A DNA stretch of 51,948 nt from contig JAAOMT010000211.1 in the NCBI GenBank assembly GCA_016748015.1, positions 1-51,948 of the forward strand, read 5' to 3'. The position numbers and the translations under genes were made by a program. The notes under the pieces are model-generated. The model did not search any database. It was not told the DNA's origin and saw only the letters and a list, made by a program, of their open reading frames with translations. This DNA is from Geosiphon pyriformis uo1 (Eukaryota; Fungi; Glomeromycota). Of the stretch, positions 1,071 through 39,553 are shown one piece after another (the stretch's first letter is position 1; each line of letters opens with the position of its first letter).

Positions 1071-4000
1071 ATGAAAATGAAGCAGTTTTTCTTAACCATT
1101 TTTTTTAATCATTACCTTTTGATTATTTGGATGTTTTTAGCTTATTTTATTTCAATTACAAAGCCAACAATGAATAAAACGGTATATAAACTTGATTCCA
1201 TCGGAAGTTGTATCCTTATAGAATTATCATTGGTCCAAGATAGAACAATTATAGTTTTACTTTGGTGCCCATTTAATATGACTTTTCATTATTCCTATCT
1301 CAAGTTTACACCTGATGGCACAGCTTCTCTATATAACTGCACTGTTTTCTGTGATACCGAGACATATCATATTGAAATTTTAAACTCTAATTATATTTCA
1401 GTGACTCCTTGGGCTCAAAAACAAAGCAAACTATTTTCGTGGAATGGAACATTAATTCAAAGGTTTTTGTTTAATAACTCTTAAAGATAAAAATCTTTTG
1501 ATTTCAAAAAAAATAAACTTTATATTGATAATACATAACACTTTATACAGCGATATAGATCTATCTAAAACTGACAATACTCGATATTGTCAGTCAACAA
1601 GAAATATCCAACAAGATAAAAATTTCCTTAGGACTTGTGGAGTTAATTATACTTCGAGCAGTTACGAAATAGAATGGACTGTTTTTAATGCTCCGTAAGT
1701 TAATATACATTATATATAATATTTGAATATGAATTTCAAAGAAATAACCTTACGCATTCAATTTACATTTAGAACCTATTCAAACGAAAACATCAAACCA
1801 ATATCTGGTTCTAAAACATTTGAAAAACTTCAATTAAATACGACTTCTTCTGGTTATTCACCTTTTGCCACAATCGACGGAGGCTTCGGATTAGCTTATG
1901 TGGCTGAATTTGGTCTCAATACAAACATAACGACATACTCAGTATACGTTACATTTTGGGAGCCAGAAACAGCTGATTTTGGTCCTCATTTTCTACTCCA
2001 CCAAATTGAATCAAAATTTGGATTATATCTTAATTGTGATGCTCAAATAAATGCTGTGGGATATTATTGTGATCTGGGAAACAACCGAATATCATTTCTC
2101 CGAAGTGGGGCAGTATTAGAATACAACACTAATGATATTAATACTATTACAATCCCACTGGCTTATGGTGGATTATTAAAAATAAAAGACTTCGTGAAAG
2201 ATACAGTATTCGAATTATATGATCAAAATGAAGCTATGAATGATTCATGGAATATCTCGAGTCTGTATGATCACAATTCCTATACTATCTTATCAAACAA
2301 TACTTTTTGGGCTGTTACATCAGTCGGGACCGTCTATACTAAAAATTTACCATCCTTTTTAAAAAAAGGTTAGTAAGATTAAATGGAATGAGTTAGATTT
2401 TCATGATTTTCATTAATTTTTTTATTATTTGAACAGACACTAGATATGAAAATCCTTTTATCAATACTACCAACCCTCCTCTTAACGAAACGATTCCATT
2501 TGGGGCTCGAGAAATAAAGATTAATTATTCCGTGGAAATTGCACTTTCAAATAATAATATTTCTATCTATCAAAACAATGAAACTGAACCAATTCTGAGG
2601 CAAAGTATCTCTGCAAAGTCACAATATTGTCATGTGGATAACAAAACTATTAGAGTGGATGTTTTTGGAAGCACATTTAATCAACCGGATAAAGATTATT
2701 TTATTGTCGTCAATAATAATTTTGTGAAAGATGTACAATATAATGAAGCCATTAAAGGAATTAATAGAAATATATGGCAATTTAAAACAGGTAAACGTAC
2801 ATATTTTTTAATTTTTTCATTTCTGACAAATTTGTTTTAAAGATTAATAATTCATTGATTCATTCCTTTGTTTGTTTGTTTGTTTGTTTGTTTGTTTGTT
2901 TGTTTGTTTTTTATTTCATTTGAATGGTTTAGAAGGAAAAGAAAGCAAATATGCAGGTAAGAAGTTTTATTGTTTATTTTTTATTAGAAAATTTTTAAGG
3001 TCGCTATCTAACTAAAATACATAATATTTATTGTTATTGATTTAAGCTACCCTGATTGGACTCTTACGTCTGAATACAAATTTCTCAGATTTCAACAAAA
3101 TTAACGACGAACGAGAAGTTTTCAAAACACTTGAAGATCAATTATCTTTTACAATTCCAGTTGAAAGAAGTCGTATCAAAATTATTGATCATAAGACTGA
3201 TAAATCTAAATCAGAATCAGTAGGCCGAGCAATATTACGACTTCAAATTTCTTCAAAAAGCGGTTCTAGAAATCCAATGGAAATTGCACATGACCTCAAT
3301 GCATTAATCGAGAATAAATGGTTCACTCCCATTAGCACTTATTCACACACCGGCTTTTTAGATGAGACTTTTGGGTTCCAAGTTCAACGTGAGCGAGCAT
3401 TAATTAATCTTCATTATTTTATTTCTATTAAACTGTATATCATTTAATAATTTTTTTGTTTTTAGCAAATTTTTGGAAAAAATATAAATTTCATCTAATT
3501 GCAATTCCTATTATTGCAATAATATTAATGGCTCTATATTTTATAGGAAAAAAGAAAAATCCAAAGGTATTTGATTTATTTTTTTTGCTGTTATATTGGG
3601 ATTTAATTATTGTGGTTTAAAGTTTAAAATTAAATAAATATTTTAATAACTTTTACTAATTTTAGGGTAATAGCTCTGCAGTTGTTTCTATTATATTAAT
3701 TCTAGTCGATATCATAGTTGACATCGCATTCACAATAAAAAACGGAAAAGATGTGGGATTTTTATATTTACCAAGTTAATTCATTTTGTAAATTGTAAAT
3801 ACATCAAAAATTTAAAAACAGCAAAGATAATTAATTCGTATATTTTTTTTTGAACAGTATTATTTTTCTGGTAATACCTTTTCTTTTCAACACAGGACTG
3901 GCAGGATACATCATAATCAATGAGATTAGCATTAATAGAGAATATGTTGTATGGTTTCGGAAATTCGCAAAGCCCGCTGCCTTATTCACTATAATCTCTG

Positions 4001-4444: not shown

Positions 4445-5689
4445 ACCTTTTGAAATTGTTATTATGAGTCCAATGATTTTCTTTGTTTAATAATTTTAGC
4501 TTTGAATTTAACAATATTTATCGTGAAAAGAAAATAGAAAATGTAAAAAAAAGACATAGCTTATTTTCTATATAATTTAGATTATAGAGATATACTATAA
4601 ATATATGTTTTTTAATTAAAAATTGAAATTGTTTAGTATTGAAATATTTTTAGATAAATGCTATCCATTTTCTTTTTTAGGATCTGATTGCGATTATCAC
4701 TTTCGAGCTCTCAGAAAATGGGGCTATTGGTTTTTCATTATAGATTGAAACATAATTAACTTTTTTGGGCCTTAGCATTCACTCAAAAATGGCAACTGAT
4801 AATTAATTTGCCGCATAATAAAAATAATTTTAAAGTTAGATTGGTTTCATATTATGAAGCATTTTTCTTTAAAAAAACTTTTCAAGTTATAGCTTCTTTT
4901 GATAAAAAAATCTAATTCGAGATAATTGGCGATTATCTCCTTAAATCTACTTCTAAATTAGTTTTATTGTAATTCCAAAAAACAATCATCATGAGAAAAG
5001 CAATTTTTGAATTATAGCTGGGAAAACATAGTCAGATTTTCTTTTCATGACAATTAACGCTCCCTCAAGTCAGTCGAAAAATGAAATTGCGTTTTAATTA
5101 ATGAAGCTGAAGAAATTATTTTCTGGCGAAAAAAATTAAATTATCAATATTGTATTGATAAAGAGAGATTTTTAAGAAGTTTGTCTTGCTAATAAATAAT
5201 GATTTCAAACTATTAAATCACATTCCCGAAAAGCTAGAAATTCATTCACTTTATTTACATTACATCAAAAACTATGTTTGTCATTATCCTATTGATATTT
5301 TTATTTTTAAATGAAAATCTTTTAATTTTTAACAATTTATTTGCATTTTCAATATATATCATTTATAAGAATATTTATTTAGTGCGTGAATGAATGCATT
5401 ACACATATATCATTGTGTGTGTGTGTTACATATAATCCATTTATTTTAATTTTACGCTAAAAAACAGAAACTTAACGTCACATGTTCACTTTTTACAGCA
5501 TGCTTTATATCAAGATTAATAAGGAAACACTTTATAATCAATAACTTTCACACTCAAAATAGTTATCAAATGAACTATATTTTATAGCCTATATGATACT
5601 CTTTAATATAAAATTAAAAACTAATTCCTCTCTGAAATTTTTTATCTATTCCAAGTTAAATATCATCATTGATTGCATAAATCCAAATC

Positions 5690-6600
5690 CAACTCTAAAA
5701 AAGGTGAATAAACCAAGAAAGTTTATGAAATATTAAATATAAAAAATGAAAGGCTTATGCTTTATAGAAAATTCAGGTTTTGAGATCAATCGGTCTCAAT
5801 ATCTTGCCATATCTTTGATAACACTTTATGTCTCTTCCAAAATTAAGGCTTGTCGATTTAAGTTACAATTATCGTGAGTAGCAATAACTCTTTGTTGAGA
5901 TTCTTCTACAGTGTCATGACAAGCCGGTGTATGTTTTTTGATCATAGGATGCTTTCCATTAATCACATCAAATTGCATGTGAATAGGATCTGTATTATTC
6001 AAAAGTTCTTTCTCCCCAAATAATTTCACAGAAAATGATGGCAAAGCTGAATATATTGTTATACTTAATATGAGGAACCCTTGCAAATCTTGGGTACAAG
6101 ATACTCAAAAATATCATAAATATTACCAGACTGTGGAGAATAATTGGCATGGCAACAGAATCCAAGATCAGAAATGACGACTTTTAAGGTTTTGTTTTCA
6201 AAACATGAATATTTCGAGAATTTAAGTCCTCATGCACCAGATTTGAATCATGTCACTAGCAATTCCAAAAAGCATATGAAGAACCATTTCCCAAATAAGA
6301 GTTGTTTCGTTCATCTTGAGAAAAGTTCAGAGTTACTCATCCATTTTAATAGCAACATCCAAGTTGTATTGTGCATTTTGATTTTCTGCCTCTCTGCTTT
6401 TGAATAGCTTCTAAATTTTTCACTGTTCCTCATTTATTTCGGATAATATATTCTAATATTGGCTTGTGGACTTGGATTTCCCACTTTTTCTAGATCTTTC
6501 ATTTGTTTCCAGTCTATTTGCATACACAATGTTCTTTTTCAATCAAAATATAACTTCAACTTCGAGGCACTAACTCCTTAATGAAATAGATTTCTTTTAA
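5690..6600 (-). pseudogene. Decayed Sel1-repeat/protein kinase paralog
   Basis: 5840-6330 aligns with the kinase at 20780-21310 (e.g. TTTAAGTTACAATTATCGTGAGTAGCAATAACTCTTTGTTGA; ...ISDLGFC...). 6350-6520 resembles the Sel1 region at 22250-22420. Frameshifts and deletions present. Confidence 0.75.
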
Positions 6601-11572: not shown

Positions 11573-11999
11573 TTTTTTCGTAGATAACAATGAGTGATTC
11601 TCCAAAAAATAATACTCGTACCAAGTCTACTTTACCTTGAGTTAGTTCTGATTTCAGGGGAGCAGGGGTGCTTTAAAAGTTTTGGTTCTTATCTGTTTTC
11701 TTTCTTTTAATTTCTATAATCGAATCAGCCGAAGAAGTACTAGCTTTGCCTTCATAGCTTGGAAAAGTGATACATAAAAATCTATTTCGGCTGTGAAACA
11801 TTTTATGCTAATTGACCATTCACTTTTTTTATCTTGTGTAACCGAAATTATGTACATATTTATTAAGCCACCAAGGCTAAAGAAAGTAAAATTGTTATTT
11901 TTTATATAAAATTTAATAAATAAATAATTTTTTAAAGAGTTTTTATACAATCAAAAAAATACTTGGTTTTTGTTTATCAAATTTTATATTTAAATTATT

Positions 12000-14900
12000 T
12001 TAAAAAATATATATAAAATAAATAATTATTCTTAATTTATTTTGTCACAAAAAAATAATCACTGTGTTTTATCTAATATACCAAAAAATATAAATTATAT
12101 ACTATTAAAAAGCTAAAAAGCATATGATTTTATTAAAAAAATTTAATATAATATTTTTTTCTTTTATTTGCAATTATCATTTCACAATAGTGTTTTATTG
12201 ATCTTATTAACCCAATTAGAATAAATTAAGAAATATCTTATTATTATTTTTTATAAACTGCTTTAATTCATTCCGATTTTTAAACATACTTCTTTATATT
12301 TTTTTACAATAGCTCATAAGTTTTTAATAAAATTCAAGTCAGAACTATTAGATGGCTAAACTATAACTTTAAACATATTCTCTTGAAAAAAAGCTTTGGC
12401 TAAACAACTTGTGTGTTTTGGGTTATTGTTCTATTAAAATTATCACTTACTCCTTAATATTCTTTTTATCTTAAGTAAATATTCACGAATAATTTCTACA
12501 TAAAACTTAGCATCTATTATTTGAGCAAAACAAAATAAACTTATCTTTTCTTTTTCATAAAAACTATCTTACACCATAATTTTGTTTAATCTTTTGGTAC
12601 AACACAAGTTAATTACTGGTCTTTATACCAATATTCTATTGTATTTTAGAATAAACAAAAAGCTGTTTTATTTGAAAAAACAGCTCTTTTACAATTATCA
12701 TTGAGATGTTTTTAAGCTCACTTTACACAATTTTTCTTGTAAAAATTAGTAAACATTGGAATTTTCAAAGGTAGATCTCTTTTATATCTATAATTAATTA
12801 AATATCTTTGAATAATACTAAAAAAACATCTATACTTTTTTTGCTAATTTTATTTTCAAAGTTCTCAAAAATATTAAAAAATCTCGATAAAGGTATTGTT
12901 TTAATGTTTATAATGCATCTTTTTTAATTTTTTGCAGCCAACTATTTCTACTTGTATGTTTTACTCTTTCTGTTTTTTGAGTTTTTTAAAAATATTATAG
13001 ATAATAGAGTATAATATATTTATTTGCTGTTTTATTTCAGTTGTATTTCATATCCCTTTATTCCAAAAATATAATACAGTTTGGTGCAATGTTTTTTGTT
13101 TAGAAAGTAGTATTATAAAAGAAAATTTCTAAAAAAATTATTAGTAAAATGTGCAAAAAAAATTTATTATATTTAGCCACTTACCTTAGCATTTACTTTT
13201 TAAAAAAATAATTGAATTTAGTTATAAGAACATTTTGCAATAAAAACTTAGAATTATATTAAATTTTTTAATATAAACATGAATAATTGTTTACAAAAAA
13301 ATTTAAAAAAAAACATAAAATATTTTCTTTAAGTATTAATAACTTAGTTCTTAAATATTAATTAAATTAAAATAATGTTTTTGATAACAAATTTTTAAAT
13401 TGATAGAAAAGATCATTTATAATCAAAAAAGTATTAAATAACAAATTTTATATCTTGTAAAATTAATATAAAATAAAATTTAATAATTGATTTGTTTATA
13501 ATATATAAATCAAAAAATACTATAAAAAACTTAATTGATTATTAATTATTGTAATATTCACAATATTCATTAGTAAAACACCAAAACATTTTTAAGTAAA
13601 ATTATCTTAATCTTAAAACAAATGTAATTTTAATCAGTATAGAAAGATATTTCTTTAATTAAAATATACAAAATATTTTTCTTATAATTTACAAATATTA
13701 GATAAAAAACTACTTAGATGTTTTATTTATCATTGGAAAACACATAACAATTAAAATTAAAATTAGAATATATTTTGTTATTAATTTACGAAAAACTGTT
13801 TAAAAAAAACAGAAAATTGGCAGCAAACTAAAAATATATATGCTTAAATACATAACTGCCAAAATATATAATTTTTTTAATATACTTAGAAAATAATAAA
13901 AGAAGTTTTGCTTATAAATAAGCATTATTATATAAAAAACAACTTAAATATTATAAAAAACTTAGTGAAATTATTAAAAATATAAAGCTTTTAAAAAAAA
14001 CAACTTTAGAAATTCAGATAAAAATCTTAAACATTATATGTTTAAATATTTTTAATTATTGTAAAAAAGCCAAAAAACTTATATAAAAGCTTGATTTCTT
14101 GAATTTAAAATTAATATTGCTATAGTTTTTATATATTTTATCAATTAAAGATTTTAATAAATTAGTTAATTTCGAAATAAAAATCTCAAAATTTCTTTTA
14201 AATAAATTTATTTTACTTAAATTCAATTTTTTTGGAGAGTATAATATTATAGTTAAAACTTTTACTTTTTAGTTTTATTTATTTATTTATTTATTTGGTC
14301 ATAATTATTGACTTAGTTATTGACTTAATTGTTAATTTAATTATTAATTTAATTATTAATTTAATTATTAATTTAATAATTAATTTTTTTTAACAGTATA
14401 TAAATAAAATCTCCAAAAACTATAAAATTTATTCACACTTAGATCAAAATTTATTTATAGCAAAAATTAATACAATAATTTTTATTTTTTTATTTTTTTT
14501 TCTTGATTGTATAATTGTTAGTTTTTGTAAAGTATATTAAATAAATATTTAATATTGAATTTTAAGAACACTAATATAAAATATTAAATTATATTAATAT
14601 ATTATTTTTTGTTAACATTATAAACTATTTTTTTATTTTTAAACTTTTTATTATCTTTTAAAAAAATAGCAATTGAAATATTTATAAAATTAATCTTATA
14701 TATTAAATTTTTATTAATTTAATTTGTTTATTAAAGTTAAATTACTTTTTAATTATTTTTATTATCATATAATGTTGTTTTTTTTTGTTATTTACTAGTG
14801 TGTTATATTAATCATAACAAAATTATTAAATTATAAAAACAGTTTAATATTATTAAACAAGAAAACAATAAAGCTATTATTATATATTTAGGATACTTTT

Positions 14901-16570
14901 ATTAACCTTTTTAATAATTTCAGATAATTAACTTTAATTATTATATAGATCTTCAAATTTTGAATCAATTTATTAAAAAATTGCATAGCAATATCTTTTA
15001 AAAAATATGTTTATTATATTTAATCAATTTTTAAACAATAATAATATTGATTAAAAATTTTAAATCACCTAAGTTAAAAGCAAATTATACTTAAATCATA
15101 AATTTTATAATAAATAATTTATCTGAATTAGATACCAAATTAAAACAATTTGATGAATTTTTTACAAAAATAATAAAAAAATACTTAATTAATTAAGTTA
15201 TTTATTAGTTATCTTAATATTATAATATTAATAAAACAACTATTATTTTTAACTATTATTATTAAATTAATTATTTTTCAATTATTATTATAAATAAGAC
15301 TATATTAAAGTTAATTATTATTTTTTATTGGTAAATTAATAATTAAAAAATTAATATAAAAATTTTATTTGTCAGTATAAAAGTTTAAATTACAGAATTA
15401 CAAATTTATTAAAACAATATTAGTATTAATTATATTATTTATCAATAATACAACTATAATTTTAATTAGTATATATACTAATTTTATATTAATTACTATT
15501 GTCTTAATTTATTTATTAACTGTAGTTATAAAAACTATTATAACAATAATTTCCAACTTAAATACCAATCTTAAAATCACAAACAAATTAACAAAACTGA
15601 AAATCAATAATAATTACTTATTAAATAATTTTTAATACTATTGGTTTACAATAAAAAAATTATATTAAGAACTTATAAAATTCACAATTACAATTTTTAA
15701 ATTTTTTAAATTTTTTAAATTTTAAAGTCAAATTACAACCAATAATTTAAAACACAATTTCTTTAACAATACAATTGTACTTATTATTATTACAAAAAAC
15801 AACTTATTAATTGTCTTATTTATATTTATCTAAATAATAATAAATTCAAAAAATTATTTTTTAATAAAATAGCTTTAAATAATTAGCAATTTATAACTCT
15901 TATGCACATTAATATTAAAGTTAATAGTTAACTTATCAAATTTATTTTTAATAATAGTTTAACAAATAATATTATTATAAAACAATTTATATATTAATTA
16001 AATTATTAATTTAATTAAATTATTAATATATATATTATTATTGTTAATGAAGTCATAAAACTTTTTATTGGCAAAATTAATGATTTTTTTTAAAGTTAAT
16101 AGTATTATAATACTGATTAGAATACTTATAATAAAAACTATACAATATTAAGCTTTTATAAATAATAATTAATTGTCAAAAACCAATATTATTCTTAACT
16201 AAAATGCTTAAAAATTACAATTCAATTACCAAAAATAATAAATATAAACTTTAGCAACATATTTTTATTTTTAAACAACTATTATTTAAGAAATCTCTCT
16301 AATTAAGTTTAAAAAACCTAAAAACAACCCATTTTTAAAACTTATTAAGTTTTATAAACCAACAATTTTGGAATTAATTTTATATTATTAATTATATATT
16401 AACAAAAAAAACTTTGTAAGCTTTATTTAACTTGATTAATTGCAATATTTTGTGTTATATTTACTAAAAACACTGTGATAAATTAAATTACTATTTCTTA
16501 TTTTAAATATTAAAAATTTATATTAATATAAAATTTGTCTTTTTATATCTATTATAAAAGTAAATTTTTG
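12000..16570 (+). mobile_element. Hypermutated Ty3/gypsy relic (gag and protease decodable at ~14700-16300) within an extreme AT tract
   Basis: 14954 CAA ATT TTG AAT CAA TTT ATT = QILNQFI (cf. QILDQFI at ~50338). 15941 TTT ATT TTT AAT AAT AGT TTA ACA AAT AAT ATT ATT ATA is LILDSGSAGSIIT after C>T/G>A. 16143 CAA TAT TAA GCT TTT ATA AAT AAT AAT TAA is QYQALVGNDW. Outer limits approximate. Confidence 0.8.
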
Positions 16571-18539
16571 AATGTAAATTAGAAAATAGATTTTGATGAG
16601 GCGGAAAATGAAGCGTTCTAAACCGAAAACAAGAACCGAATCGATAATGATTTAATGATAATAAAACAATATACGCTATTATTTGAGTTATATGGCGACG
16701 ATAAGATTGAATTTCTTTGACTTGTTGTTTTGTGACAAATCAAGAATTTCAAAATAAAAAATAGTTTACACTACCTATAAAATAGTCACATAATAAAAAT
16801 CTATAAAAAAGTTTGGAAGACCAAAAGAATTACTAGAGGTCTTCGAAAATCTGTCACGGCTACTTTTCAATATTAAGCTCATGTTGATTGGTAGTTTTTG
16901 AAATTAAATACTGTATTATTGTAAATAACCTTATAAATTTTCCACTTCATACATTTGTTGATTGCTAGAATAAAATGAGATGAATCAAATTATCGTTTTT
17001 GGTTGAATCAAGGTTAACTATTTCAAGTATATCATCAATATTTTATTTTCAAATCTATGAAAAAAAGGTACACTCTATGTGATCTATTGTTCATTGATAT
17101 GCTATCTGGTTTAGGTGTTTATCGAAAAAAAAAATTCGATTTTGTGAGGGATGAAGGATTGATTTTACCGTTAAGTTTTATAAAATGCAACTCATTTAGA
17201 AACAAAAATTTGTTTTTAAAAAAGTTATTTGCACATAAAAAAATTTTTGAGCTTAAATTTAATTTAGAAATTAAGCAGAATGTATAAACTTTTATTATGC
17301 ATGAATAGTGATAATATTTTTTTAAATTTTTTCTTCCCAAATATTTATTTTATAAGATATTAATCTGGAAATTGTGTTATTTATTCAGTTATTTTGATTA
17401 CATATTGATATGAATTAGAAAATTTTTTTTTCATCAAATGTTGGGCATTTTAATTAGTAATGGTTATATGATAATAATCTCAAAAGAAATTTAACCACGT
17501 GCTTAAAGCAATAGGTAGTTAATTTTAGAGATTATTTTATACTACTCATTTTAAGTTTAAAAAAGAATAGAAAAAATACTATTCAAATTACTATAGAATA
17601 TTGAATTTGATATTTTGAAAATTTCTAACAAGAAAGTTTGCAATAAAAAATTTCTGACCTCTTTGTTGCTCAATACTTAAGTATATTGAAAATTTAGAAA
17701 CACAATATTTTTTTGGTTAAATATTTATCCCAGCTTTACAGAGTTTAATGAAATTTCAAGATTTTTTAAGAAAATTAGTCTTTGCCAAAGTAGTTTGAAT
17801 AAAAATTGTTTCTCAGTATGATTCATTTACTAAAAAATATTATTTTAACTAAAAAAATGACTATATTTAAAACAACAAAATTTAATATTTTTTAATAGCT
17901 TTCACGAACTTCTGAACCCTTTTAAATTTTGCTTGATATCAAGTGTGTGTTTTTTTGTAAACCATTAATCCTCTCGTTTATTTATCATTCCGAGTTTTAA
18001 CTGAAAAAAATAAATTTATTCCTAAAACCTATACACCTAAATAATATCTATTTGTAATGCTTTAATTTAAAAGTTCCTATAAAGATAACAGTTCACAGAA
18101 GAAATAGCGGAATTTAATGTTTTAGAATAAATTCTAATAAAAATTATGTATAATCTTATGGCATTTTTGAGTAATAATGAATTATGATAACTTTTTTCAA
18201 ACTTCAATGTTTAAAAGATTATAAATTTTGAACCAAGCTGTTCTCAGGTTTCATTTATATTCCAATACTTGAATATTAATACCCTCAATTGCTTTCTTTG
18301 AGTGAATTTTACTAGTTGTTTAATTAATGCCAAAATGTTTTTTTTTACAAAGTAATGCCGAATACATTAGATTTTATACTAGATTTTAAATTGATTATAT
18401 TATTAAGAACACATCATCTCAATATATACACTATCTAATAAAGTACATATGTATTGCCAAGTGTTTCAAAATCTTGGGGATTTTTTTCTATGCGCCCATT
18501 ACCATTAAACTCATCTACGAATGACCCACAAAACAGATA

Positions 18540-20599: not shown

Positions 20600-23133
20600 T
20601 TTTATTCGTATGACTGATGCTAATAGAAAAATCCAGATCTGGAAAAAAAAAGCTTAAATCAAAAAAATTCTTGACCATTAAATATGATAAATGAAAGTCT
20701 TACCACTCATTGAACATGTAAAGTTTGAAATTAATTGACTTTTATATCTTGTTGCATCATGTTGAGCACGGACGAGTTCATTTAAGTTACAGTTATCGCG
20801 AGCAGCAATAACTCTTTGTTGAAGTTCTTCTGCAGTGCTACTGTATTGTGGATCACAATGCCAATTTTTTTCAATCATTTCCTGAATACACTGAGGTGTA
20901 TGTTTCTTTGATTGTAGGACGCTTTCCCTTAATCACATCAAGTAGCACGTGGATAGGATCTGTATTATTCAAAGGTCTTTATCCTGATATAATTTTACAT
21001 GAAATGATAGCAAAGCTGTATATATCGCTATACTTAGTATGAGAACCCCCTTTGCAAATTTCGGGCGCAAGATACTCAAGAACACCATAAGTGTTTCCAG
21101 ATTGTGGAGCGTCATCTGCAGGACGACAGAGTCCAAGATCAGAAATAACAATATTTAAGGGGTTTGTTTTCAAAACAAGAATATTTCCAGGATTTAAGTC
21201 TCCATGCAATAGTTCTGATTCATGCATAAACCTTAGCCCACCAGTGATTTGAAAAAGAATACGATGAAACATGTCCCAAGTAAAAATATCTTCGTTCGAC
21301 TTGAGAAAGCTCTGAGGTTCCCGTGTTCCTCAAATGGTAAAACCATAATAAATTCATCAGTTGTAAGATTGTTGGTTATAGCATTCAAGAATGTATTTGC
21401 AGGTGGCACTTGTAAGATGCGCAATAAACTATTTCAATGGGTTTTTTAATGTTAGAAAAGAAATTAGAATAATAAAAATCACATAGATTTCTTAAAAGAA
21501 AATACCTCATCTGAATTAATATATTTTATATTTTTCGCTATCTTTTAAGATATTTCAAAGCAACCTTTGTAACCCCAGTTCATTCATACTTTTGAATTTT
21601 CTTGTCCCAAAATAGAATTCTGCCTCTCTCCCATCTACCTTCTTTGACAATACCAAATCCTCCCGCTCCTACTTGATCTAAATGTATGATGTCTTTAGGA
21701 GAAATCCATTCCAGACAGCCTCTGCAGTTTTCAGAATTACGCTGTGTATATACTATATACTGATCAATATTATTATTTCCACTATTCCATGTTCCCCAAA
21801 TATTTAAAAATCGTAATGATTCACAAGAATTACACCAAACTGGATCTTTTAATGCACTGTAGCATTCTAGATATTTTGGCAAGCCTGCTTCAAAAACATT
21901 ATCATCACTATTATCAGTATCACAAAATGGACATATAGGAGATCCATTAATGATTATACCCAAGTTGCCACATTTAAAACACTTGAATTCATCTGAAAGC
22001 TGGTCAAAGAAAGCTTCAAAATCCGAAAATTCTCCCTTCAAATTATTAGGGTATTTAAAGCCTCGATTTTGGAATTGTAAAATGAAATGTTTTAAATAAT
22101 CTTGATCGACTAGAGTAAGGTTGCGGGCATTCAAATTGGAAAAATCACTGCAATAACTTAAATTATTTGCTCCTGTTTCTTTTAAATATATAGTTCAAAT
22201 GCTTTTGTGAGGTTTTTTGTAGTTCCCCATCCATTTTGATAACACCATCCAAGTTTATATTGTGCATTTTGATTTCCCACCTCTGTTGCTTTTAAATAGA
22301 ATTGAAATATTTCTAGATTTTCCCTATTACCCATCCATTTTGATAATGCATTCAAATATTAGTTTCCGGACTCGGATTTCCCACTTTTTCCAGATCTTTT
22401 GTTGTTTCCAATCGATTTCGATAATATTCTAAAAGATTAACTTGTGCAATCAAACTTCCCGCCTCCGCTGCTTTTGAATAAAGTTCAAATGCTTTTTCCT
22501 CATTTTTTTCGTTCCTTTTCCATTAGCATAACAAAGTGCAAGAGTGTATTGTGCATTCAAAATGTCCTGCCTCTGCAGCCTTTGAATAGAGTTCAAATGT
22601 TTTTTCCTCATTTTTCGTTGTTCCCGATCCATTATCATAACAAACTGCCAGATTATATTGTGGATTTACATGTCCCGCCTCTGCTGCTTTGAATAGAGTT
22701 TCAATTTCTTTTCCAAATTTTTGATTGTTCCTTCTCCATCTCGATAACAAATTGCAGGATTGTATTGTGCATTTAAATCTCCCGCCTCTGCTGATTTTGA
22801 ATAGAGTTCAAATGCTTTTCCTCGATCTTGTGAAGTACCAATTCTATTATTATAATTATAACAATAACCTAAGAAAAATTGTTCAAAAGAATCTTCTGCG
22901 CTCGCTGCTTTCTGAAATTCTAAAAATGCTTTTGTTAAATTAGGAATAGTTCCAATCCCATGTTCTAAACAAAAGCTGAACAAGATATTGTCTATTGAAC
23001 GCTTTGGACTTTTATTATTCAAGCAATTGAATAAGTCTTTAGGCGTTTTCTGATTGTACACAAGATGATTATTAACAAAGTCAGCAACTTTTGAAAACTT
23101 ATTAGAGTGTTTGGATAAACAGAAATTTTTCAA
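20600..23133 (-). pseudogene. Sel1-repeat / Cys-motif / TKL-type protein kinase gene, multiply frameshifted
   Basis: Kinase motifs GAGGFG, HGDLNPGNIL, ISDLG, YLAPE, SDIYSF. Upstream Sel1 repeats (AFELYSKSAEAGDLNAQYN). Intron ~21503-21423. Many frame breaks. Confidence 0.85.
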
Positions 23134-23232
23134 ATGTCAGATTTATTTTCAGTTAAATATTAATACAAATTGAATTTATAAATTCATAAAAATTGAAAAA
23201 TCTCAAAAGGTATGCCAAAAAAAATATTGAAT

Positions 23233-24174
23233 TCATTTTCGAGGTTTAAAAATATTCCAAAGAATTTCTATTGCTTCGGAGTCCCCATCAATATGTGCTC
23301 TTCGAAGCAGTTTTATAGCTTGATGATTATCATTCTTGAAACGTTTTTCAATACTCGCTAAAACTGTTTCAGCTTTTAAACAAGCATTTTCAGCCGCTTT
23401 TTGAAGCCAGAAGGATGCTTTAAGAAATTTATGTTTTTTAAGTAAGATCATTCCCAAAGTTAATTGAGCTTCCCAATGTCCACCTTTGGCCGCTTTCTGA
23501 CACCATTCAAACTCTTCTCTCCAATTGCCTCTATTCTGACCATACCATGATGCTACAATAAGAAAATCCATTTATTTGTAATTAAAAAAAAAACATTATA
23601 ATAGTTTTATTCTTTGAAAAGGGATAAAAATTTTCATACCCAAATAAAACATGCCACCAGGATTACCCCGAAGTGCCACAGCTCTCAAGTTTTCCAATCC
23701 TTTATTTAGATCATACGAGATACCAGCACCATAGGTATAGCACCACCCTATGCTAATTTGCGCAATATCGGATCCAAGTTTCGCAGATTCTTGCCACAAT
23801 TGATATGCTTTATTATGATCGGGAATGGGAATAGAGGGTATATTTCCAACGTCATAGTAGTATGCTACTTGATACTCCCCAATAGACATATTTTTTTTGG
23901 CAGCTTCTTTATACCATTGGTATGATTTCTCAGAATCAGTTAATGTTCCAATTCCATGACCATAGAAAAATCCTAAAAGGTGAGGATAATGCAGGTAATT
24001 TTCTTCTTGCAAAAGAAGTTCCATTATTTCTCGAGGATCAATTTTCTTTTTTCTCATCCATCTTTTAATATAAGGGAGAATCATTGGATCACTTTGAAAA
24101 ATACGAGTTGAATTTAAGTGTATATTAGAAAGCTCTTCAAGTATTTCTCTTTGTAAATATATATTATTTAGCAT
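23233..24174 (-). CDS. Sel1-like repeat protein, 284 aa, two exons
   Basis: Exons 24174-23640 and 23552-23233; GT-AG intron 23639-23553 joins in frame. Sel1 motifs (AQISIGWCYTYGAG, AQLTLGMI). Confidence 0.85.
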
Positions 24175-25699: not shown

Positions 25700-26290
25700 A
25701 AGGATTTTTAATATATACATAAAATTTTAGAATATAAAGTTGGTATTAATAAAATAATTTTTATCAAAACAAAAAATTGTAATTGTAATAAAAATTAAAA
25801 TATTCTAATTTTAATGTATATATAATTATTGATTAAATAATACCAGATTTTATTATTATTATTATTATTATTATAAATATATAATTTTTATAAATCAAAT
25901 GTATTTTTATAATTTATTAAAACAAAAAATAATAATAATAATTAAATGTATTTTTTTAATTAATTTTATTATTTGATTAAATTTATCAAATTTGATGTAT
26001 TTATGTTATTCAAAATAAAATAATAATAAAAAATTATAAGATTAAACAAAAGTATTCTTACTTAAATAATTAATTAATTATTTCAAAATAAAATTAAAAT
26101 TAAATTAAAATTAAAATTAAAAATAAATAATATTAAAAAAATATCAAATTAAAAATTTATTACAAAAAAATTATATGTTTATATATAATTATTATAAATA
26201 TATTATAATATTATAAATTTTTTTTTAATTAATTTTTTTTAGATCTAATATTGTATTAAAAAGCCAAACTTAATTATTATTAATTTTGAA
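25700..26290. other. Extreme AT tract, probable hypermutated repeat relic (unidentified)
   Basis: Nearly G/C-free with sharp borders, like the decodable relic at 12-16.5 kb. Confidence 0.4.
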
Positions 26291-26684: not shown

Positions 26685-27854
26685 CTAACGCGTTGGAGCA
26701 ATACAAACCATTTTATGGCGTTTATAATCTGATTTCTGACATTCTACACCACAATATAACGCCTTCTTACATCTAGAACACATATTCAATTCGACCAAAG
26801 CGGCCAAGGCTTTCTCTTCATTCTCCAAAGTTTTATCAATTACATTCCCTTCTTCATCAATTTGTTTTCGTCGATAATCATAAAAAGTGGTCAAGACTTC
26901 CGTTTCAAATGAATCTCCTTGAGACTTTTCACATTGGATATTATTACATAACTGTTGTGGTACTCGTACTTGATCTTTGTGATGATCAAAACGTGGCCAA
27001 AAAAATTGTCTCACATCTTGGTCGTTTTCTTCATCTTTTCGGCCGGTCCAGAATCCTGGCAAGTATTTCATTATTGATGTATTCTCACGCTGTCGTAGCC
27101 AGACAATTATTGGTTCGTCATCAATTAATGAAAAACAAATGAAAAATCCTGGATCAGCTTCCCGGCGTAATACATGCATACGATCCCGAAATTCACGATA
27201 CAGAAATCTATATCTTTTTGATTTCTCATCATCACCACCACCAAGCTTTTTACACATTTCTTTTCGAAGAAATTTTAATTTCTTCAATTCTGCCTCGATC
27301 CCAAACATACATCCCTCCTCTTCTTCCTTCTTGCACGGGTAGAAAGAGGGTAGCATATGAACATACTTTAGTGACGCGCGACGAATAACAATTTCCATTA
27401 AAGAAAGAGGTAAATCAACAGCGATCACAGGAAAAGTAGATTCGTTTTCATATCTATTGCTCAGAATTACAATCATCGTTCCAACGTGTGTTAAGATCTT
27501 GTCAACAATATTACTACCTTCAACTACCTCAGGTATGGATTCAATGGTAATTTTTTCTGGGAGTCGAAAGCATTGATAACGGCCAGTATCCACAGTTTTC
27601 ATTTGGCAATGGCGTTGCCAAACCTCGGGATCACCTAGTTCAAAAGAGGAATCTAAAGGTGGTGGAGAAAGATCTAAAAAGTATGGTGAAGCAAGAAAAA
27701 CGCCTTCAGAGGTGGAATTTGCTGAGACTACCCATTGTTTTAGCAGGCTTAGAGAGGGGATGATCCCATTAAGCTGTCTTGTTCTGGTAGCAAACAAATG
27801 CCTTTGCTTCAACAGTGGAAGTTTTGTTGGTTCGATTATATGAAAAGAGGCCAT
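26685..27854 (-). CDS. Intronless protein with C-terminal MYND zinc finger (~389 aa)
   Basis: ATG at 27854 (MASFHII). CNNIQC ... CSRCKKALYCGVECQKSDYKRHKMVC. Confidence 0.85.
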   Translation of the reverse strand: MASFHIIEPTKLPLLKQRHLFATRTRQLNGIIPSLSLLKQWVVSANSTSEGVFLASPYFLDLSPPPLDSSFELGDPEVWQRHCQMKTVDTGRYQCFRLPEKITIESIPEVVEGSNIVDKILTHVGTMIVILSNRYENESTFPVIAVDLPLSLMEIVIRRASLKYVHMLPSFYPCKKEEEEGCMFGIEAELKKLKFLRKEMCKKLGGGDDEKSKRYRFLYREFRDRMHVLRREADPGFFICFSLIDDEPIIVWLRQRENTSIMKYLPGFWTGRKDEENDQDVRQFFWPRFDHHKDQVRVPQQLCNNIQCEKSQGDSFETEVLTTFYDYRRKQIDEEGNVIDKTLENEEKALAALVELNMCSRCKKALYCGVECQKSDYKRHKMVCIAPTR

Positions 27855-27997
27855 GTTTTGTATTAGCACAGAAAAGACCAAAGACTATTATAAACTTTAA
27901 TTTACGATAATCATGGATAATCTCAGCCATTCAAAAAATAAATTTCAATTATAAGATTTGAATAAATTGCTAGAAATTTCAATTCTAATATAATTGA

Positions 27998-30529: not shown

Positions 30530-31726
30530 TTATGCAAGTGACGATTTTACTACAATTTCAGTCACACGATAGGGATCAATGTTGGATGCCGGTCGACGAT
30601 CTTCGAAATAGCCTTTACCTTCCGCAGCGACATGCCTTGGAATTCGAATAGAGGCACCACGATTGGCTACTCCAGAGGAGAATTGTGATATATGACCAGT
30701 TTCATGATGACCAGTCAGTCGCTTATCATTATCTTCACCGTATACAGCGATATGTTCGGCGTGTCTTTCAGATAGTTTTTCGATCGCCTCATGAATTGCT
30801 TTAATTCCACCTTCAGCCCGCATTGCTGCCGTCGAGTAATTCGTGTGACAGCCGGCACCATTCCAATCACCAGGTATTGGTTTTGGATGAAATGATGCGA
30901 CTACACCAAAGTCTTCAGCTACTCGATGCAGTAGGTACCTTGAAATCCATAAATGATCACCCATTTCAATACCTTCACATGGACCAACTTGGTATTCCCA
31001 TTGACCTATAAATCAGGTGAAGTAGATAAAGGTAATGGATGTAATGAGTTAAGTGATAAAAGGAACTTGTTTTAACACACAAAGGTGCTGGTGAAAGGAT
31101 ATGTTAGGTAATATATCATGACTCCTCAATTACATACCAGGCATGACTTCTCCATTGACACCGGATATCTTTACTCCAGCATATAAGCATGCACGATAAT
31201 GAGCCTCGACAACATCTCGACCGAATGCTACATTAGCCCCGACAGAGCAATAATAAGGACCTTGAGGTCCTGGGTATCCTCCCTTCGGCCATCCGAGCAC
31301 TTGTCCATCGGTATCAAACAAAGTGTATTCTTGTTCAATACCAAACCACGGCTCATGATTGGCATATTGTTGCATTATTTTATTACAAGTGTAACGATAA
31401 TTTGTCCGATTAGGTGTACCGTCATTATTCCAACATTCATTTAAGACGAGAATGTTATCGCCACCACGGAACGGGTCCTTGAAGATGGCTACAGGACGAA
31501 GCAAGACATCCGAGTTATTGCCGGGGGCTTGATTGGTTGAGGAACCGTCATAATTCCATTCTTTAAGTTGGGATGTATCAGTCGGGAAAGAGTCCAAGGT
31601 AGCCGTTTTACCACGAAGGCCAGAGTCGCCATCAATCCAAATATATTCGGCTTGAATTTTTCCACCTTGGTCGAGAGCGAGGTATTTCTTGAGAGTTTCA
31701 GAGTTGGATTTATTGATGAAAGCCAT
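30530..31726 (-). CDS. GLN1: Glutamine synthetase (type II), 354 aa
   Basis: Exons 31726-31138 and 31005-30530; GT-AG intron 31137-31006. Motifs [61 protein letters not shown]. Confidence 0.98.
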
Positions 31727-34599
31727 TTTAAGTCTTTTCAAAAAAATTCGTTGAAGGGTTGAAGAGTAAAAATTAAGGTATGTACGAGTATTTTTCCTAG
31801 GAAGAAAGTTTATTCAAAAGGGAAAAGTGAACTTGAAGTTCTCGGAGTTTAGAAAGGTTTGGTGAAAGTAGTTTCGTAAAGTGAAACTTTAACACCAAAA
31901 AATGTCGTTATTACAGGTAAATCAAGAATAATCGTGGTTTTATCAGTTTAGGTAAGTCGTTAAGTGAATAAGACCAAAACCTTTGTTGAAAAAAACTGTA
32001 GGGAATTGAGCTGATTTAATTGTGTTAGTTGATTAGGAAAGTGAAGGGCGTTTAAGATTAAACTATTACGTGCGAGAGATCTCAGCAAAAGTAATGTCTA
32101 ATCTACGAAAAATTTAAACGAAATAAAAGTTACAAAAGAAGTTAAGATAAAACCGAAATAAAAGGAACCAGAAAAATTTTGTTGAATTAAAAATCGAATT
32201 AACAAACAAAAAGTTTGCAAAATTGTCTAAAGAACAAAAGAATTTGGGTGAGAAAGCAGTCTTTATATATGAGATTGTATAGGCTGATTTGATTCATTAG
32301 TAATGAGTTACGATCGATGAAGTGATACCTTTTGTTTTCATCTAGTCACAGCCGATATGATTGATTGTCGCCATATACCTTTCAATTTAACTATTAATAA
32401 AAAAGAATTTAATGTTGGCAAAACAAATTAGAGTTGAATTAAAAGAATTGTGTAATCATTTAATAGCAAAATACCGGTTTGACAGGTAAAAAAAATGAGA
32501 TTATTTGTTTTTTTAAGGAGAAATTTGTGTCAGATGTTTGGGATAATAAGCACGAAAATTGGGGGGAGAAGTTCAGTTTGTGATATAGATTGGCCAATAT
32601 GAATTTGAAAATTACTCGGATAATGCACACAATCGATGGCGCTGGTGACTTATTTGTGTTCTATAGGCAGAAAAAAGAAAGTCCGAGACAAATTGGGGTG
32701 TTAATCTTCGAGATCTATGTTTGAATTTTTAAATGATAATCTGCTGTCAAAAAATGAACTGTACTTTTTAAAGTTCGATGGCTAATCTGCGGCGCAACTG
32801 AAAATGAATTAAATTTACACCAGTATTTGTTTGGTGATCAATGATGGTGTCGGATCAATGGTATGATCATTAATTCGACGAATCAGAAATTAAAAAAATA
32901 ATATAAAGCTTGCGTCCACCGCTCCAGGGGTGAGTTGATTTTCCAATCATTAGAATCTTCGAAAAATATGAGTAGGTTAAAAATGAAAAGATCAAAAAAG
33001 CTAAAGATGAGACATAGGAATCGGGGATTCCCTGATCAAATTTTGCATGTGACTGACTTTCGAGATCGTCGAAAACTTTTTACGGCGATAAATAGTGAAG
33101 CATGGATGAACTTAAACTGGAAATAGACTGTAGATCCGAATCAATGGTTCTTCATTTTCTGGCATTGTTTTGTTGGTCACTTCATAAAGATAACGGGTTA
33201 ATACGGGGCAAACAACAGATAAAAAGATAAACATCCCCCTATTTACGGAAAAACATGACAGCCTAGAGGTATTCCGAAGGATTTAACTAATTTTTGCTAT
33301 CATCATCACCTTCTTTTTCTTAAAATAAATTAAGTCAATTGGGAACTTTCGGAGAGGTCAGGATAGAGAATGACGATCAATTCCTCCCTTCTTTTTTTTT
33401 ATTAACTGTTGCCAATCATCTATTTTTGTGAGATAATGTTGTGAAAGGTATTATAAGGAGAAAGGTGTCACACGAAGCAGAAACAATCTTTGATGTATTC
33501 AGTGATACGATCTTCCCGAGTAGACTTCTTGGCTGATTTTTGGAGGTCCATTTCTTCGGGAAAACTTCAGGTATCCCTAATATCTTTTCAAAGAAAACCA
33601 AAGAATTTCGACAAATTATGAGCCACCTGGTCTTTGGAACCCATGTTTAGGTAAGCCAATGGCAGAAAGTAGAAACTTTGCATCAAAGAACGAAAAACTA
33701 GAACCTAAACTTGATTCAAATTCTAAAAGAAAAAATTAAAGATCATAATATTTAGTTATTTATCCCTCCTAAAATTTCTTTGACAGATGCACGAGAAAAA
33801 CAGGTTTCTTGAATTCGTTTTAAAAAAGAAATTTTTCGAGTATACCTGTGAGGCGGCAATTTCTTGAATTATGTTGTTCAACTTACCCTTTTGGTCTCCT
33901 TTTTTTGTATGCTCCTGATAAACTCACTTATTAAATTCACTAATTAAGTCTGCTTCCCACTTTCTTGCACATATAATATGCATGATGGCTTGGTTATTTG
34001 TGATTGCTTCGAACGGCTTAGAATCTTAATTTAAAGTTAAGGTGAGACTAAGTCATACAACATAAAAGTTTGAGCCGCTCGTGTGAGTTTTTGTATTTCT
34101 GTATGGAGGCCTCGTGTGGATCTCATGTATGTGTCAAGTAAACTAAGTTATGTGTCTTTTATTATATGTGGTTAAACCCAATTGAAGCCTTGCCTGAGCT
34201 TAGTTTGCGAATTTTTTTAAAAATATTCTTTCCTAGTCATCTCGAAAAAGGGGGCTTGGAGTAAAGTTTGTTTAACAGGTTATAAAAGTTATAAATCAAT
34301 TTTTAATTGATAACCAAATATCTTTGGGACACGCATCTGCCCGTGTGCTCTTAAATAAGGTTTTAACTTATGCCTTTGTCATACGGAAATAATCAATAAA
34401 ATTTTTTAAGGAGTTGAAGAATATTAAAAGGGTTTCTTGAAAGAAAAGAGGTCAAAAGAAAGGTGGGATTGTGGGTATAAAATATTAAATTGTATACCAT
34501 TTAAACTCTTCTCTGTTATTTAACAGAACTTTTTTTTGCACCCGATTAAAAGATTTACCTAATAATCAATAAATAATTAATCATCTTTTTCTTAAAACG

Positions 34600-37500: not shown

Positions 37501-37975
37501 TTAATTAGTTTTAATAATATAAACAATATTAGAATTTTTTTAATTAAAAAAAGTTAATATTTTTTATAATATATATATAATTAAGTTGGTTATTTTTGGT
37601 TATATTGTTTTTAAAATTAGCAAATTAGATTTTTAAATTTGTAATTATATTTGTTTTATTTTTTTATTTTTTTTTAAATTAAATTAATAAATAATTTAAT
37701 TATATAATTAACTTTGAAAAATTACAGTTGTAATCTTTTTAAAATTATAAAATTATAAAAAAATTTGTAATTATTAATAAAAATAATATAAATTTTATAA
37801 TTTTAGATCTTAATTAATATTTTTAAAATTTAATAATAAATATAATTAAGATTTTTATTTGTGTTTATTAATATATTTTTATTAATTTTTTTATTTTTTT
37901 ATTTTTAAAAAATTAAATTTAGTTTAAATATGTTTATTTATTTATTTTTTGGTTATTTTTGTAAAATTTTTTAAT
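34600..37975. mobile_element. Extreme AT tract, probable hypermutated transposon relic(s), interrupted by a LINE fragment
   Basis: Near-total G/C loss with abrupt borders; I could not decode its identity. Confidence 0.5.
36080..36522 (-). mobile_element. 5'-truncated LINE insertion with poly(A) tail and 9-bp TSD
   Basis: T15 at 36080-36094 (poly-A on minus). ORF C-terminus ...DIWLVCAKHQAFMERNGLIP...VSVHISV*. TTTGTATTT at 36074-36082 and 36523-36531. Confidence 0.85.
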
Positions 37976-39540: not shown

Positions 39541-39542
39541 TT

Positions 39543-39553
39543 TGGTGCTCTTC
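39543..39553 (+). promoter_or_regulatory. Candidate primer-binding site of element 2 (TGGTGCTCTTC)
   Basis: TGG lies 2 nt after the LTR end and would pair with a tRNA 3' end ...GAGCACCA. The tRNA was not identified. Confidence 0.7.

Follow-up and report, generated by a model that had tools for sequence, protein, structure and literature searches.

A dead Ty3/gypsy retrotransposon fragment in an AT desert of Geosiphon pyriformis and the probable course of its C-to-T decay

The AT-rich stretch at positions 14803-16411 (forward strand, GC 0.12) of the 51,948-nt Geosiphon pyriformis sequence analysed here, hereafter the window, is a dead but genuine piece of a Ty3/gypsy LTR retrotransposon. It corresponds to the gag-protease part of the family, approximately element positions 1527-3130 (position in the intact copy L024 minus 673), and matches it collinearly only under a scoring that tolerates C>T and G>A changes. 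The ends of the fragment were set by homology to other desert copies and correct the limits of 14700-16300 in the original prediction. Reading them as the ends of a discrete 1.6 kb unit was rejected, as the other desert copies are mutually homologous over more than 3 kb, into the RT region. Our findings further support a mutational process that singles out transposons instead of affecting the whole genome and that is relaxed in its sequence context. As for its cause, we lean towards post-insertion C>T decay of a fragment left by an old burst of the family, presumably driven by transposon-directed cytosine methylation in all contexts and deamination.

The homology was established by a local alignment in which C>T and G>A are scored like identities. 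Window positions 14806-16364 aligned to L024 positions 2200-3760 with a score of 336, whereas shuffled sequences reached 62.6±3.6 (maximum 70), the reverse complement 60 and the reversed sequence 66. No signal was detected between desert and element with plain scoring (38 vs 31.8 by chance), or with a mock scheme allowing C>A and G>T (58 vs 56.5). With ancestral G and C treated as wildcards, the score was 68 vs 48±2.4, indicating that the homology is backed by the A/T sites alone. A longer alignment (13292-18406) was dropped because the permissive scoring was in its linear regime, with a chance score of about 614. The transition-tolerant comparison that had been suggested thus recovered the family, and the two motifs from which a retrotransposon remnant had been recognised were found where the original prediction placed them. 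Of the 39 nt of the first motif, at 15941, 20 are identical, 13 differ by transitions (all G>A or C>T) and 6 by transversions; for the 30 nt of the QYQALVGNDW motif, at 16143, the respective counts are 18, 9 and 3. Codon register, which was said to be kept, is preserved locally but not throughout, gap events occurring about twice per 100 nt of desert alignment. Source-sample unitigs (Logan contigs), which stem from the same DNA source and are not independent, cover the stretch and span both of its ends with zero differences, indicating that the desert is not an assembly artefact.

The family carries LTR pairs of 560-924 nt spaced by 8.4-8.9 kb, as expected of Ty3/gypsy elements, and the domains Retrotrans_gag/Ty3_capsid, Asp_protease_2/RVP_2, dUTPase, RVT_1 and RT_RNaseH, of which the desert fragment represents gag to protease only. 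In the intact relatives the order is PR-dUTPase-RT-RNase H, with the dUTPase between protease and RT. From a non-exhaustive check, we know of no report of dUTPase-bearing Ty3/gypsy elements in Glomeromycota. The same order is found in the dUTPase-bearing fungal Ty3/gypsy elements of Postia placenta (PosPlaTy3-5), Phanerochaete and Tuber (PMC2864245). A young copy at 49202-51948 (forward strand, gag to protease, GC 0.35), which served as the intact reference in the original prediction, extends past the window and shares 90-94% identity with at least 40 genomic copies of at least 1 kb. It is already disrupted, by a TGA at 51322-51324, just before the protease motif, and a further stop at 51832; Pfam Asp_protease_2/RVP_2 matches lie on 51325-51831. 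The tile map delimits an older, full-length copy belonging to a sister subfamily at 39559-49201 (reverse strand), with Retrotrans_gag/Ty3_capsid and RVT_1 domains and both LTRs (39687-40340 and 48338-49000). This copy was used as a gauge of post-insertion mutation: its LTRs differ by 38 transitions and 1 transversion, or 46:1 over a longer 864 nt. Next to it, a solo or partial LTR of the family (38566-39558, forward strand) is 93.6% identical to L023 positions 4670-5632, with 56 transitions and 5 transversions. A small decayed fragment from the protease region of the same family (26041-26147, forward strand, element positions 2682-2791) lies in a patch of 6-14% GC; its tile score of 78 against a null maximum of 60 is marginal.

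The desert itself contains more than the gypsy fragment. A second decayed unit, at 13195-14790, has a GC of 0.12. The genome contains over 20 copies of it, 72-76% identical, whose shared ends fall at query positions 1395-1404 and 2991. The tile map gave no signal between this unit and the gypsy element, and it does not occur beside the gypsy fragment elsewhere in the genome. A third, more mildly decayed unit, at 12046-13200, has a GC of 0.20 and copies at 77-82% identity. Window positions 11800-14368 have a segmental copy at C641:54674-57380 (96%/91%). Across repeat units and families, GC falls with the identity between copies, from 0.35 at 90-94% to 0.20-0.22 at 77-90% and 0.12 at 68-76%.

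How much G and C has been lost, and when? Desert GC is 0.09-0.14 vs 0.35 in the intact copy, and about 70-80% of the ancestral G/C is gone. In the window fragment, 0.30 of C and 0.08 of G are kept, and concordant tallies over ten desert copies give C>T 0.61, C kept 0.21, G>A 0.73 and G kept 0.18. A zero-inflated binomial fit puts retention at 0.30-0.32, equivalent to 1.15-1.2 hits per G/C site. The loss is therefore short of saturation, and the statement that nearly every G and C has disappeared is too strong, as 20-30% remain. It did hold that C>T and G>A occur together on a single strand and almost entirely outside CpG, since only 12 of the 561 G/C positions (2%) in the homologous intact region are in CpG context. 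Retention of C and G varies between copies with 1.8-2.0 times the binomial variance, and no site is retained in more than 5 of 9 copies; this near-binomial behaviour indicates that the decay took place after insertion and independently in each copy. For transversions the variance ratio is about 5, and most are common to the desert copies, which indicates lineage differences, not decay. We considered the 12-18% of A<->T differences as a sign of great age with proportional transversions, and rejected this reading because most of them are common to all nine desert copies. Private A<->T changes amount to merely 2-4% in these copies, which are 66-76% alike. Per private A<->T change there are about 35 C>T hits in desert copies and roughly 30-500 in young LTRs, the latter estimate resting on 3 A<->T events only. 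Transversions and indels in proportion to transitions, which would have spoken against the original prediction, were thus not found, most transversions being shared by all desert copies.

The young copies were used to define the mutation spectrum. Between the sister LTRs of four pairs, 126 transitions and 6 transversions were counted. When 98 LTR changes were polarised against other LTRs, by column majority among copies, 67 were C>T/G>A, 27 were T>C/A>G and 4 were transversions. The C>T (43) and G>A (24) changes show that both strands are affected. The dinucleotide tabulation that had been proposed revealed changes in every context, with CpG highest and no preference for CpA: per-site rates in LTRs are 8.5% for CpG, 5.8% for CpC, 3.5% for CpA and 2.5% for CpT, and singleton rates in young copies are 2.3 for CpT, 1.6 for CpC and 1.15 for CpA. 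CpG mutates 1.5-3.4 times faster than other contexts, and YpC more than RpC in LTRs (5% vs 2.3%, p = 0.003), so that 5'-T/C and CpG are favoured about twofold. No strand coherence of C>T vs G>A was detected, whether the 8 LTRs (p = 0.23) or the 29 copies (p = 0.61) were compared. The per-site ratio of GC>AT to AT>GC is 7 in the 29 young copies and about 12 in a smaller set; local misalignment of three loci (L055, L043 and L014) inflates the transversions in the 29-copy singleton spectrum. The rates in young copies and LTRs predict an equilibrium GC of about 9-13% (0.12, or about 0.09 by arithmetic from a singleton spectrum in which three loci are counted twice), which equals that of the desert. 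Counts of private mutations in the 29 copies are near Poisson, with an index of dispersion of 1.5. These copies are best BLAST hits, a sampling that misses heavily mutated young copies, and thus the near-Poisson spread is compatible with bursts.

The spectrum and the comparison with host genes support the original claim of a targeted, context-relaxed process, the targets being transposons. A pair of DNMT paralogs (1.1 kb, 93.5% identical and so 6.5% diverged, inverted and 32 kb apart) differs by 50 transitions and 22 transversions, a ratio of 2.3, which is significantly different from the 126:6 of sister LTRs (Fisher p = 6e-7). Kinase paralogs differ by 38 transitions and 20 transversions, and in Sel1 paralogs the ratio is about 0.8-0.95. 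These three gene families, all coding, constitute the host controls, and one of them is of comparable divergence. With transversions as a clock, the mutational load of transposon copies is about tenfold that of duplicated host genes. Young elements have an observed to expected ratio (O/E) of CpG of 0.13-0.14, the older copy one of 0.36, and genes one of 0.93.

We propose that the desert fragment, a 1.6 kb gag-protease piece, dates from an old burst of this Ty3/gypsy family, in which a dUTPase domain is present in the young members. Once integrated, the copies would each have lost, independently of one another, about 70-80% of their G/C, at about 1.2 C>T hits per G/C site. The driver may be cytosine methylation of transposons in all contexts, of the DIM-2/DNMT1 type and guided by heterochromatin, and the resulting 5mC would be deaminated spontaneously or with the help of the methyltransferase. 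Mutations would accumulate continuously, independently of a homology-sensing premeiotic RIP burst, and the data indeed agree with a slow cumulative process at least as well as with a burst. Comparison with known methylation decay, such as that of mammalian CpG, transposon CpG hypermutation in Basidiomycota and plant CG/CHG/CHH methylation, is consistent with this: there, too, the change is transposon-specific, cumulative and strand-symmetric, and CpG mutates fastest, with a strong depletion in elements (O/E 0.13 here) that genes (0.93) do not share. An acceleration of this order, roughly tenfold, is known for 5mC relative to C. The differences are that about 98% of the G/C lost here is non-CpG and that CpG decays only 1.5-3.4 times faster. 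In plant transposons methylated in all contexts, the transition to transversion ratio of LTRs is just a few, and the ratio of about 21 seen here after insertion exceeds by far, as far as we know, what methylated transposons of plants or animals show; in size it would appear closer to RIP. In Rhizophagus irregularis, 32-49% of cytosines were found to be methylated by LC-MS (PMC8298701), and transposons are heavily CG-methylated (PMC8647823).

The original prediction saw here an analogue of ascomycete RIP and a defence. RIP depends on the methyltransferase-like protein RID (DNMT4), acts in the premeiotic dikaryon and targets repeats of at least about 0.4-1 kb at 80% identity or more, linked repeats most efficiently. 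It is episodic and processive, with C>T or G>A on one strand predominating per event. Sex is, to our knowledge, undocumented for G. pyriformis. In a RIP-like mechanism, a RID-type or other DNA deaminase would recognise repeats through their homology and convert C to T episodically, in a premeiotic phase or independently of meiosis, round after round until the copies are AT deserts. We consider this unlikely, even though it has evidence in its favour. The near-exclusive C:G>T:A change of canonical RIP is present (67 of the 98 polarised changes), with extreme transition purity after insertion (126:6 in the LTR pairs, 46:1 in the older copy), and at about 10% GC the end product looks like RIPped isochores. 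Deserts score +0.04 to +0.18 on the composite RIP index and young copies -0.6. The genome contains at least 6 C5-methyltransferase loci, seven by PF00145 matches, among them a pair on C657; BAH domains are present at C702 and C666, two loci are DNMT2-like (C646 and C692) and another is at C371. The locus C657:788280-789372 encodes a DNMT1-superfamily catalytic domain, with no BAH domain found in the 1.4 kb upstream, and an ESM Atlas look-up of its methyltransferase exon returned generic bacterial C5-methylase clusters only. Homologues of RID, along with DNMT1, DNMT2, DNMT5 and DIM-2, are reported in arbuscular mycorrhizal fungi (AMF) (PMC8298701), and for Entomophthorales, which lie outside Dikarya, RIP-index signals have been proposed (PMC11105155).

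The specific hallmarks of canonical RIP were nevertheless not found, and the analogy, like the word defence, is not supported or goes too far. There is no strong dinucleotide preference, CpA included, in either the LTR or the singleton rates, and no strand coherence. The other desert indices, TpA/ApT of 1.04-1.08 and (CpA+TpG)/(ApC+GpT) of 0.90-1.0, are only weakly shifted, and the stricter RIPper thresholds lie well beyond these values. At least 40 copies of at least 1 kb coexist at 90-94% identity, and decay has gone on in desert copies to 66-76% identity, well short of the ~80% that RIP requires. Mutation triggered by duplication was not seen in the linked inverted DNMT duplicate, or in the kinase and Sel1 paralogs, a small and entirely coding set. 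PMC8647823 cites RIP signatures as absent in Gigaspora and Mucoromycotina, and RIP as not detected in Glomeromycota. Compared with RIP in Neurospora crassa and other Ascomycota, which depends on RID/DIM-2, the process shares the restriction of C:G to T:A change to mobile repeats, its occurrence on both strands, the sparing of genes, an AT-rich, stop-riddled product and a positive composite index. It differs in its lack of strong context preference and strand-coherent runs, its intact linked gene duplicates, the survival of large high-identity families, the continuation of decay well under the identity RIP needs, the end state and the lineage. RIPped regions of Neurospora and Leptosphaeria are much less AT-rich than the ~10% GC reached here.

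Could the desert simply be very old DNA at the equilibrium of an AT-biased, transition-rich mutation process that affects the whole genome and does not target repeats? The equilibrium predicted from young copies matches the desert, GC declines smoothly with repeat age, and a genome search for the UDG family gave a single weak hit (25 bits). Gene-adjacent deserts (L030 and L033) contain, besides some old repeats, stretches without recognisable repeat homologues, where AT matches are at chance level only. However, host-gene duplicates of similar divergence have transition to transversion ratios of 1.9-2.3, not 21, and genes retain their CpG. Intron-like gaps between ORFs inside genes, taken as unique DNA, have a GC of about 0.23, not 0.10 (n = 29, a crude proxy that splice signals may bias), and GC drops abruptly, from 35-45% to 5-10% over 100-200 nt, beside genes. 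Such neutral decay is therefore improbable. Editing at birth, by an APOBEC-like deaminase or uracil misincorporation on single-stranded cDNA, so that copies integrate already hypermutated, would suit the mild 5'-T/C preference and a dUTPase countering uracil-based restriction, but it is the least credible account, since minus-strand cDNA editing yields G>A only while both changes are common on the coding strand (43/24 in LTRs, 0.61/0.73 in deserts), the equal loss in all ten desert copies better matches a shared age, and unrelated neighbouring repeat units have equal GC.

RIP-type repeat mutagenesis is regarded as a trait of Dikarya. It is possible, if doubtful, that Glomeromycota have an enzyme-driven, transposon-directed, all-context C>T mutator, a non-canonical relative or analogue of RIP and perhaps the product of the C657:788280-789372 gene, which would need neither strict homology sensing nor, perhaps, meiosis. 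If so, RIP-type defence would predate the origin of Dikarya or have arisen twice, the evolutionary history of fungal genome defence would have to be revised, and there would be a sequence handle on a RIP-permissive (sexual or parasexual) stage and on the role of the unusually high 5mC. If the decay is instead a passive by-product of methylation, it would account for the sharply bimodal composition at the loci examined. In this respect the locus resembles the AT-rich isochores, or "two-speed" compartments, known from plant pathogens with active RIP, as well as the A/B compartments of AMF genomes, with GC-normal genic blocks, AT-rich nested dead transposons and sharp borders, though the AT blocks here go down to 5-12% GC and are not defined by a RIP signature. 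Much repeat DNA may then evade homology-based annotation, as plain alignment was blank in this desert, and in such genomes transition-tolerant alignment and transversion-only clocks should be used to annotate and date transposons.

Across approximately 11750-16500 of the window the GC content drops from 0.28-0.45 to 0.09-0.15, and the original prediction saw in 14700-16300 of this AT-rich desert a retrotransposon erased by C>T and G>A mutation. The two quoted motifs that prompted it are correctly positioned; of their combined 69 nt, 38 are identical, 22 differ by a transition (in every case G>A or C>T) and 9 by a transversion. Because collapse by C>T and G>A makes any sequence agree with near-pure A/T DNA at half of the positions, the whole region was tested, with a full-length relative as the reference (L024, C701:1777500-1787499, LTRs 8.4 kb apart). 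In a transition-tolerant local alignment, where C>T and G>A were scored as matches, L024 2200-3760 and window 14806-16364 were collinear (1561 nt vs. 1559 nt) with a score of 336, against 62.6±3.6 for shuffles (maximum 70), 60 for the reverse complement and 66 for the reversed sequence. Plain scoring of the desert against the element gave no such signal (38 against 31.8), and neither did a mock scheme tolerating C>A and G>T (58 against 56.5). When ancestral G/C sites were made wildcards, leaving A/T sites alone to count, the score was 68 against 48±2.4. The match is specific to transitions, and the transition-tolerant score and these controls together establish that the observation is real. 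Misassembly of the stretch is excluded by unitigs, which come from the same source sample and are thus not independent DNA, but span both fragment ends and tile the stretch with zero differences.

The anatomy of the window was defined by mapping it, tile by tile, onto the element. The desert holds a decayed gag-to-protease fragment on the plus strand (window 14803-16411, element 1527-3087, i.e. L024 position minus 673); no element signal was found in the tile map past 16411, and the decayed copy is therefore a 1.6 kb fragment. Elsewhere in the window, the map shows a tiny second decayed piece (26041-26147) and, near 38566-39558, a solo LTR, as well as a full older copy with both LTRs on the minus strand (39559-49201) and a young copy (49202-51948). 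The latter had been taken as an intact reference, but it is broken by a TGA at 51322-51324, immediately upstream of the DSG motif of the protease, and carries a second stop 169 codons further on (51832-51834). No full-length open copy was present among the three elements examined. The family is Ty3/gypsy, with Retrotrans_gag/Ty3_capsid, Asp_protease_2/RVP_2, a dUTPase between protease and RT, RVT_1 and RT_RNaseH domains. The older minus-strand copy (40341-48337) has a CpG O/E of 0.36 (80 CpG), and the younger, commoner subfamily represented by L024 one of 0.14 (32 CpG).

The genome harbours dozens of further AT-rich copies (10-15% GC), 66-81% identical to the fragment, where chance AT alignments reach about 58-60%; these desert copies are mutually homologous over more than 3 kb and collinear onward into the RT region. 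Losses were tallied only at sites with at least 90% agreement among 29 young copies, and the ten desert copies tallied gave near-identical results. Ancestral C had become T at a frequency of 0.61 and A at 0.16, and was retained at 0.21; ancestral G had become A at 0.73 and T at 0.07, and was retained at 0.18. Ancestral A was replaced by T at 0.18 and T by A at 0.12, and every 100 nt held about 1-3 gaps. We considered the transversions as a mark of great age and rejected this: they are mostly common to most of nine co-projected desert copies (variance 5 times binomial), and so represent differences between the desert-copy progenitor and the young family. Private A<->T change in desert copies amounts to 2-4%. 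Retained C and G, by contrast, are scattered independently (variance 1.8-2.0 times binomial, at most 5 of 9 copies at any site), indicating that each copy decayed separately after insertion. A zero-inflated binomial fit gave a retention of 0.30-0.32, corresponding to about 1.2 hits per G/C site; the erasure was thus heavy, yet short of the saturation originally proposed. The proposal that changes fell mostly outside CpG held, with only 12 of the 561 G/C of the homologous young region lying in CpG.

The same process can be followed in younger copies, where sister LTRs are identical at integration. The LTR pairs of L024, L025, L026 and the window's older copy differ by 23, 14, 51 and 38 transitions and by 0, 3, 2 and 1 transversions, respectively, i.e. 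126:6 in sum (ts/tv 21). Changes were polarised with other LTRs, column majorities among copies serving for polarisation only, which yielded 67 changes from G/C to A/T (43 C>T and 24 G>A), 27 in the opposite direction (12 T>C and 15 A>G) and 4 transversions. Per-site change was 8.5% at CpG, 5.8% at CpC, 3.5% at CpA and 2.5% at CpT, and 5.0% after a 5' pyrimidine vs. 2.3% after a 5' purine (p = 0.003). Context effects are therefore modest and every CpN context is changed, in keeping with the predicted context-relaxed deamination; no strand coherence of C>T vs. G>A was detected across the eight LTRs (p = 0.23). Between LTR subfamilies ts/tv is only about 2, so change along active lineages differs in kind from post-insertion decay. 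Private mutations in the 29 young copies, which are best BLAST hits and hence biased against hypermutated young copies, show a GC>AT to AT>GC per-site ratio of 7, a predicted equilibrium GC of 0.12 and a dispersion index of 1.5; in a smaller set the ratio was near 12 and the predicted equilibrium GC near 0.09. The equilibrium predicted from young copies is the composition of the desert. At 1.2 vs. about 0.074 hits per G/C site, the desert would need an exposure roughly 16-fold that of a young LTR, and a burst is not required to explain it.

Could the data reflect the spectrum of the genome as a whole, or duplication as such? Three duplicate sets of host genes, few and all coding, served as controls. 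Two inverted DNA methyltransferase (DNMT) paralogues (L027/L031) have diverged by 6.5% over 1.1 kb, through 50 transitions and 22 transversions distributed across all codon positions; kinase paralogues in the window differ by 38 and 20, and Sel1-repeat paralogues have a ts/tv of about 0.8-0.95. Kinase and Sel1-repeat genes are a typical expanded gene family of arbuscular mycorrhizal fungi (AMF); their cluster here (window 20895-24174, minus strand, and 5926-6252) has paralogues 80-84% identical at ts/tv 0.8-1.9, so that host gene families are not transition-mutated. The LTR pairs differ from the DNMT pair (Fisher p = 6e-7): transition density is equal, about 4.5%, but transversions are ten times denser in the genes, and transposons thus gain transitions about 10 times faster per transversion time. 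CpG O/E is 0.93 in genes vs. 0.13-0.14 in young elements. Two ordinary host genes on the minus strand of the window, a glutamine synthetase exon (Gln-synt_N, 31133-31741) and a 398-aa ORF with a terminal zf-MYND finger (26688-27881), have values near 0.93. Intron-like gaps within genes have a GC of about 0.23 by a crude estimate, and at gene flanks GC drops abruptly, over 100-200 nt, from 35-45% to 5-10%. Together with the host duplicates these observations argue against a genome-wide spectrum, and the sparing of those duplicates against duplication as such. Of the predicted repeat targeting, the part concerning transposon DNA stands, while the duplicated host genes examined escape.

The remainder of the desert consists of no fewer than two further old repeat units, at window 13195-14790 (copies at 72-76% identity) and 12046-13200 (77-82%). 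Window 16450-18450 (GC 0.22) is likewise repetitive, at 65-90% identity, and across these units lower inter-copy identity accompanies lower GC. Window 11800-14368, the left part of the desert, is 96%/91% identical to C641:54674-57380 on another contig, a recent segmental duplication of already AT-rich DNA. Another AT desert (C411) contains a perfect 760-nt tandem duplication (L002 463-1222 and 1243-2002). Further deserts of 5-12% GC lie at window 35000-38000 and 25750-26250, L030 1900-3183 and the ends of L031 and L033; some adjoin genes, the GC changing stepwise over 100-200 nt, and parts have no recognisable repeat homologues.

The C>T process is therefore strand-symmetric, context-relaxed, post-integration and restricted to transposon DNA, with an equilibrium near 10% GC. 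As its driver we favour all-context cytosine methylation directed at transposons, followed by 5mC deamination. This would account for a roughly tenfold transition excess, the size known for 5mC, and for CpG being the fastest site and depleted only in elements. DNMT1, DNMT2, DNMT5, DIM-2 and RID homologues are reported in AMF, and R. irregularis methylates 32-49% of all cytosines (PMC8298701), more than CpG alone could hold, which also favours methylation. A RID-type enzymatic mutator is a possible alternative, and the ts/tv of 21 is above the level expected from methylation alone. The genome has seven PF00145 loci: two with BAH domains, two DNMT2-like, one unclassified and a pair on C657 with a DNMT1-superfamily catalytic domain. 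No BAH domain was found in the flanking sequence examined near this pair. The C5-DNA-methyltransferase gene at C657:788235-789565 (L027 1456-2786) is possibly RID-like; its inverted paralogue 32 kb away (L031 1337-2437, about C657:820549-821649; 93.5% identical) has several indels (11, 182 and 26 nt) plus stops and is probably a pseudogene. Repeat-induced point mutation (RIP) signatures were reported as not detected in Gigaspora and Mucoromycotina, as cited in PMC8647823, and RIP-index signals have been suggested, with caveats, outside Dikarya in Entomophthorales (PMC11105155). Among the papers listed on RIP in R. irregularis or AMF, one states that an AMF yielded no RIP signatures, and none of the listed titles and abstracts describes such a signature. 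A Geosiphon/AMF transposon survey nowhere mentions RIP, and no paper listed on Geosiphon GC content or AT-richness was relevant.

The young family, that of window 49202-51948, encodes a dUTPase domain (PF00692, E = 6e-20, L024:4409-5161 on C701). Such domains are already known in gypsy elements of some basidiomycetes and Tuber (PMC2864245). An element-encoded dUTPase is intriguing in a genome where transposons die by deamination-type mutation.
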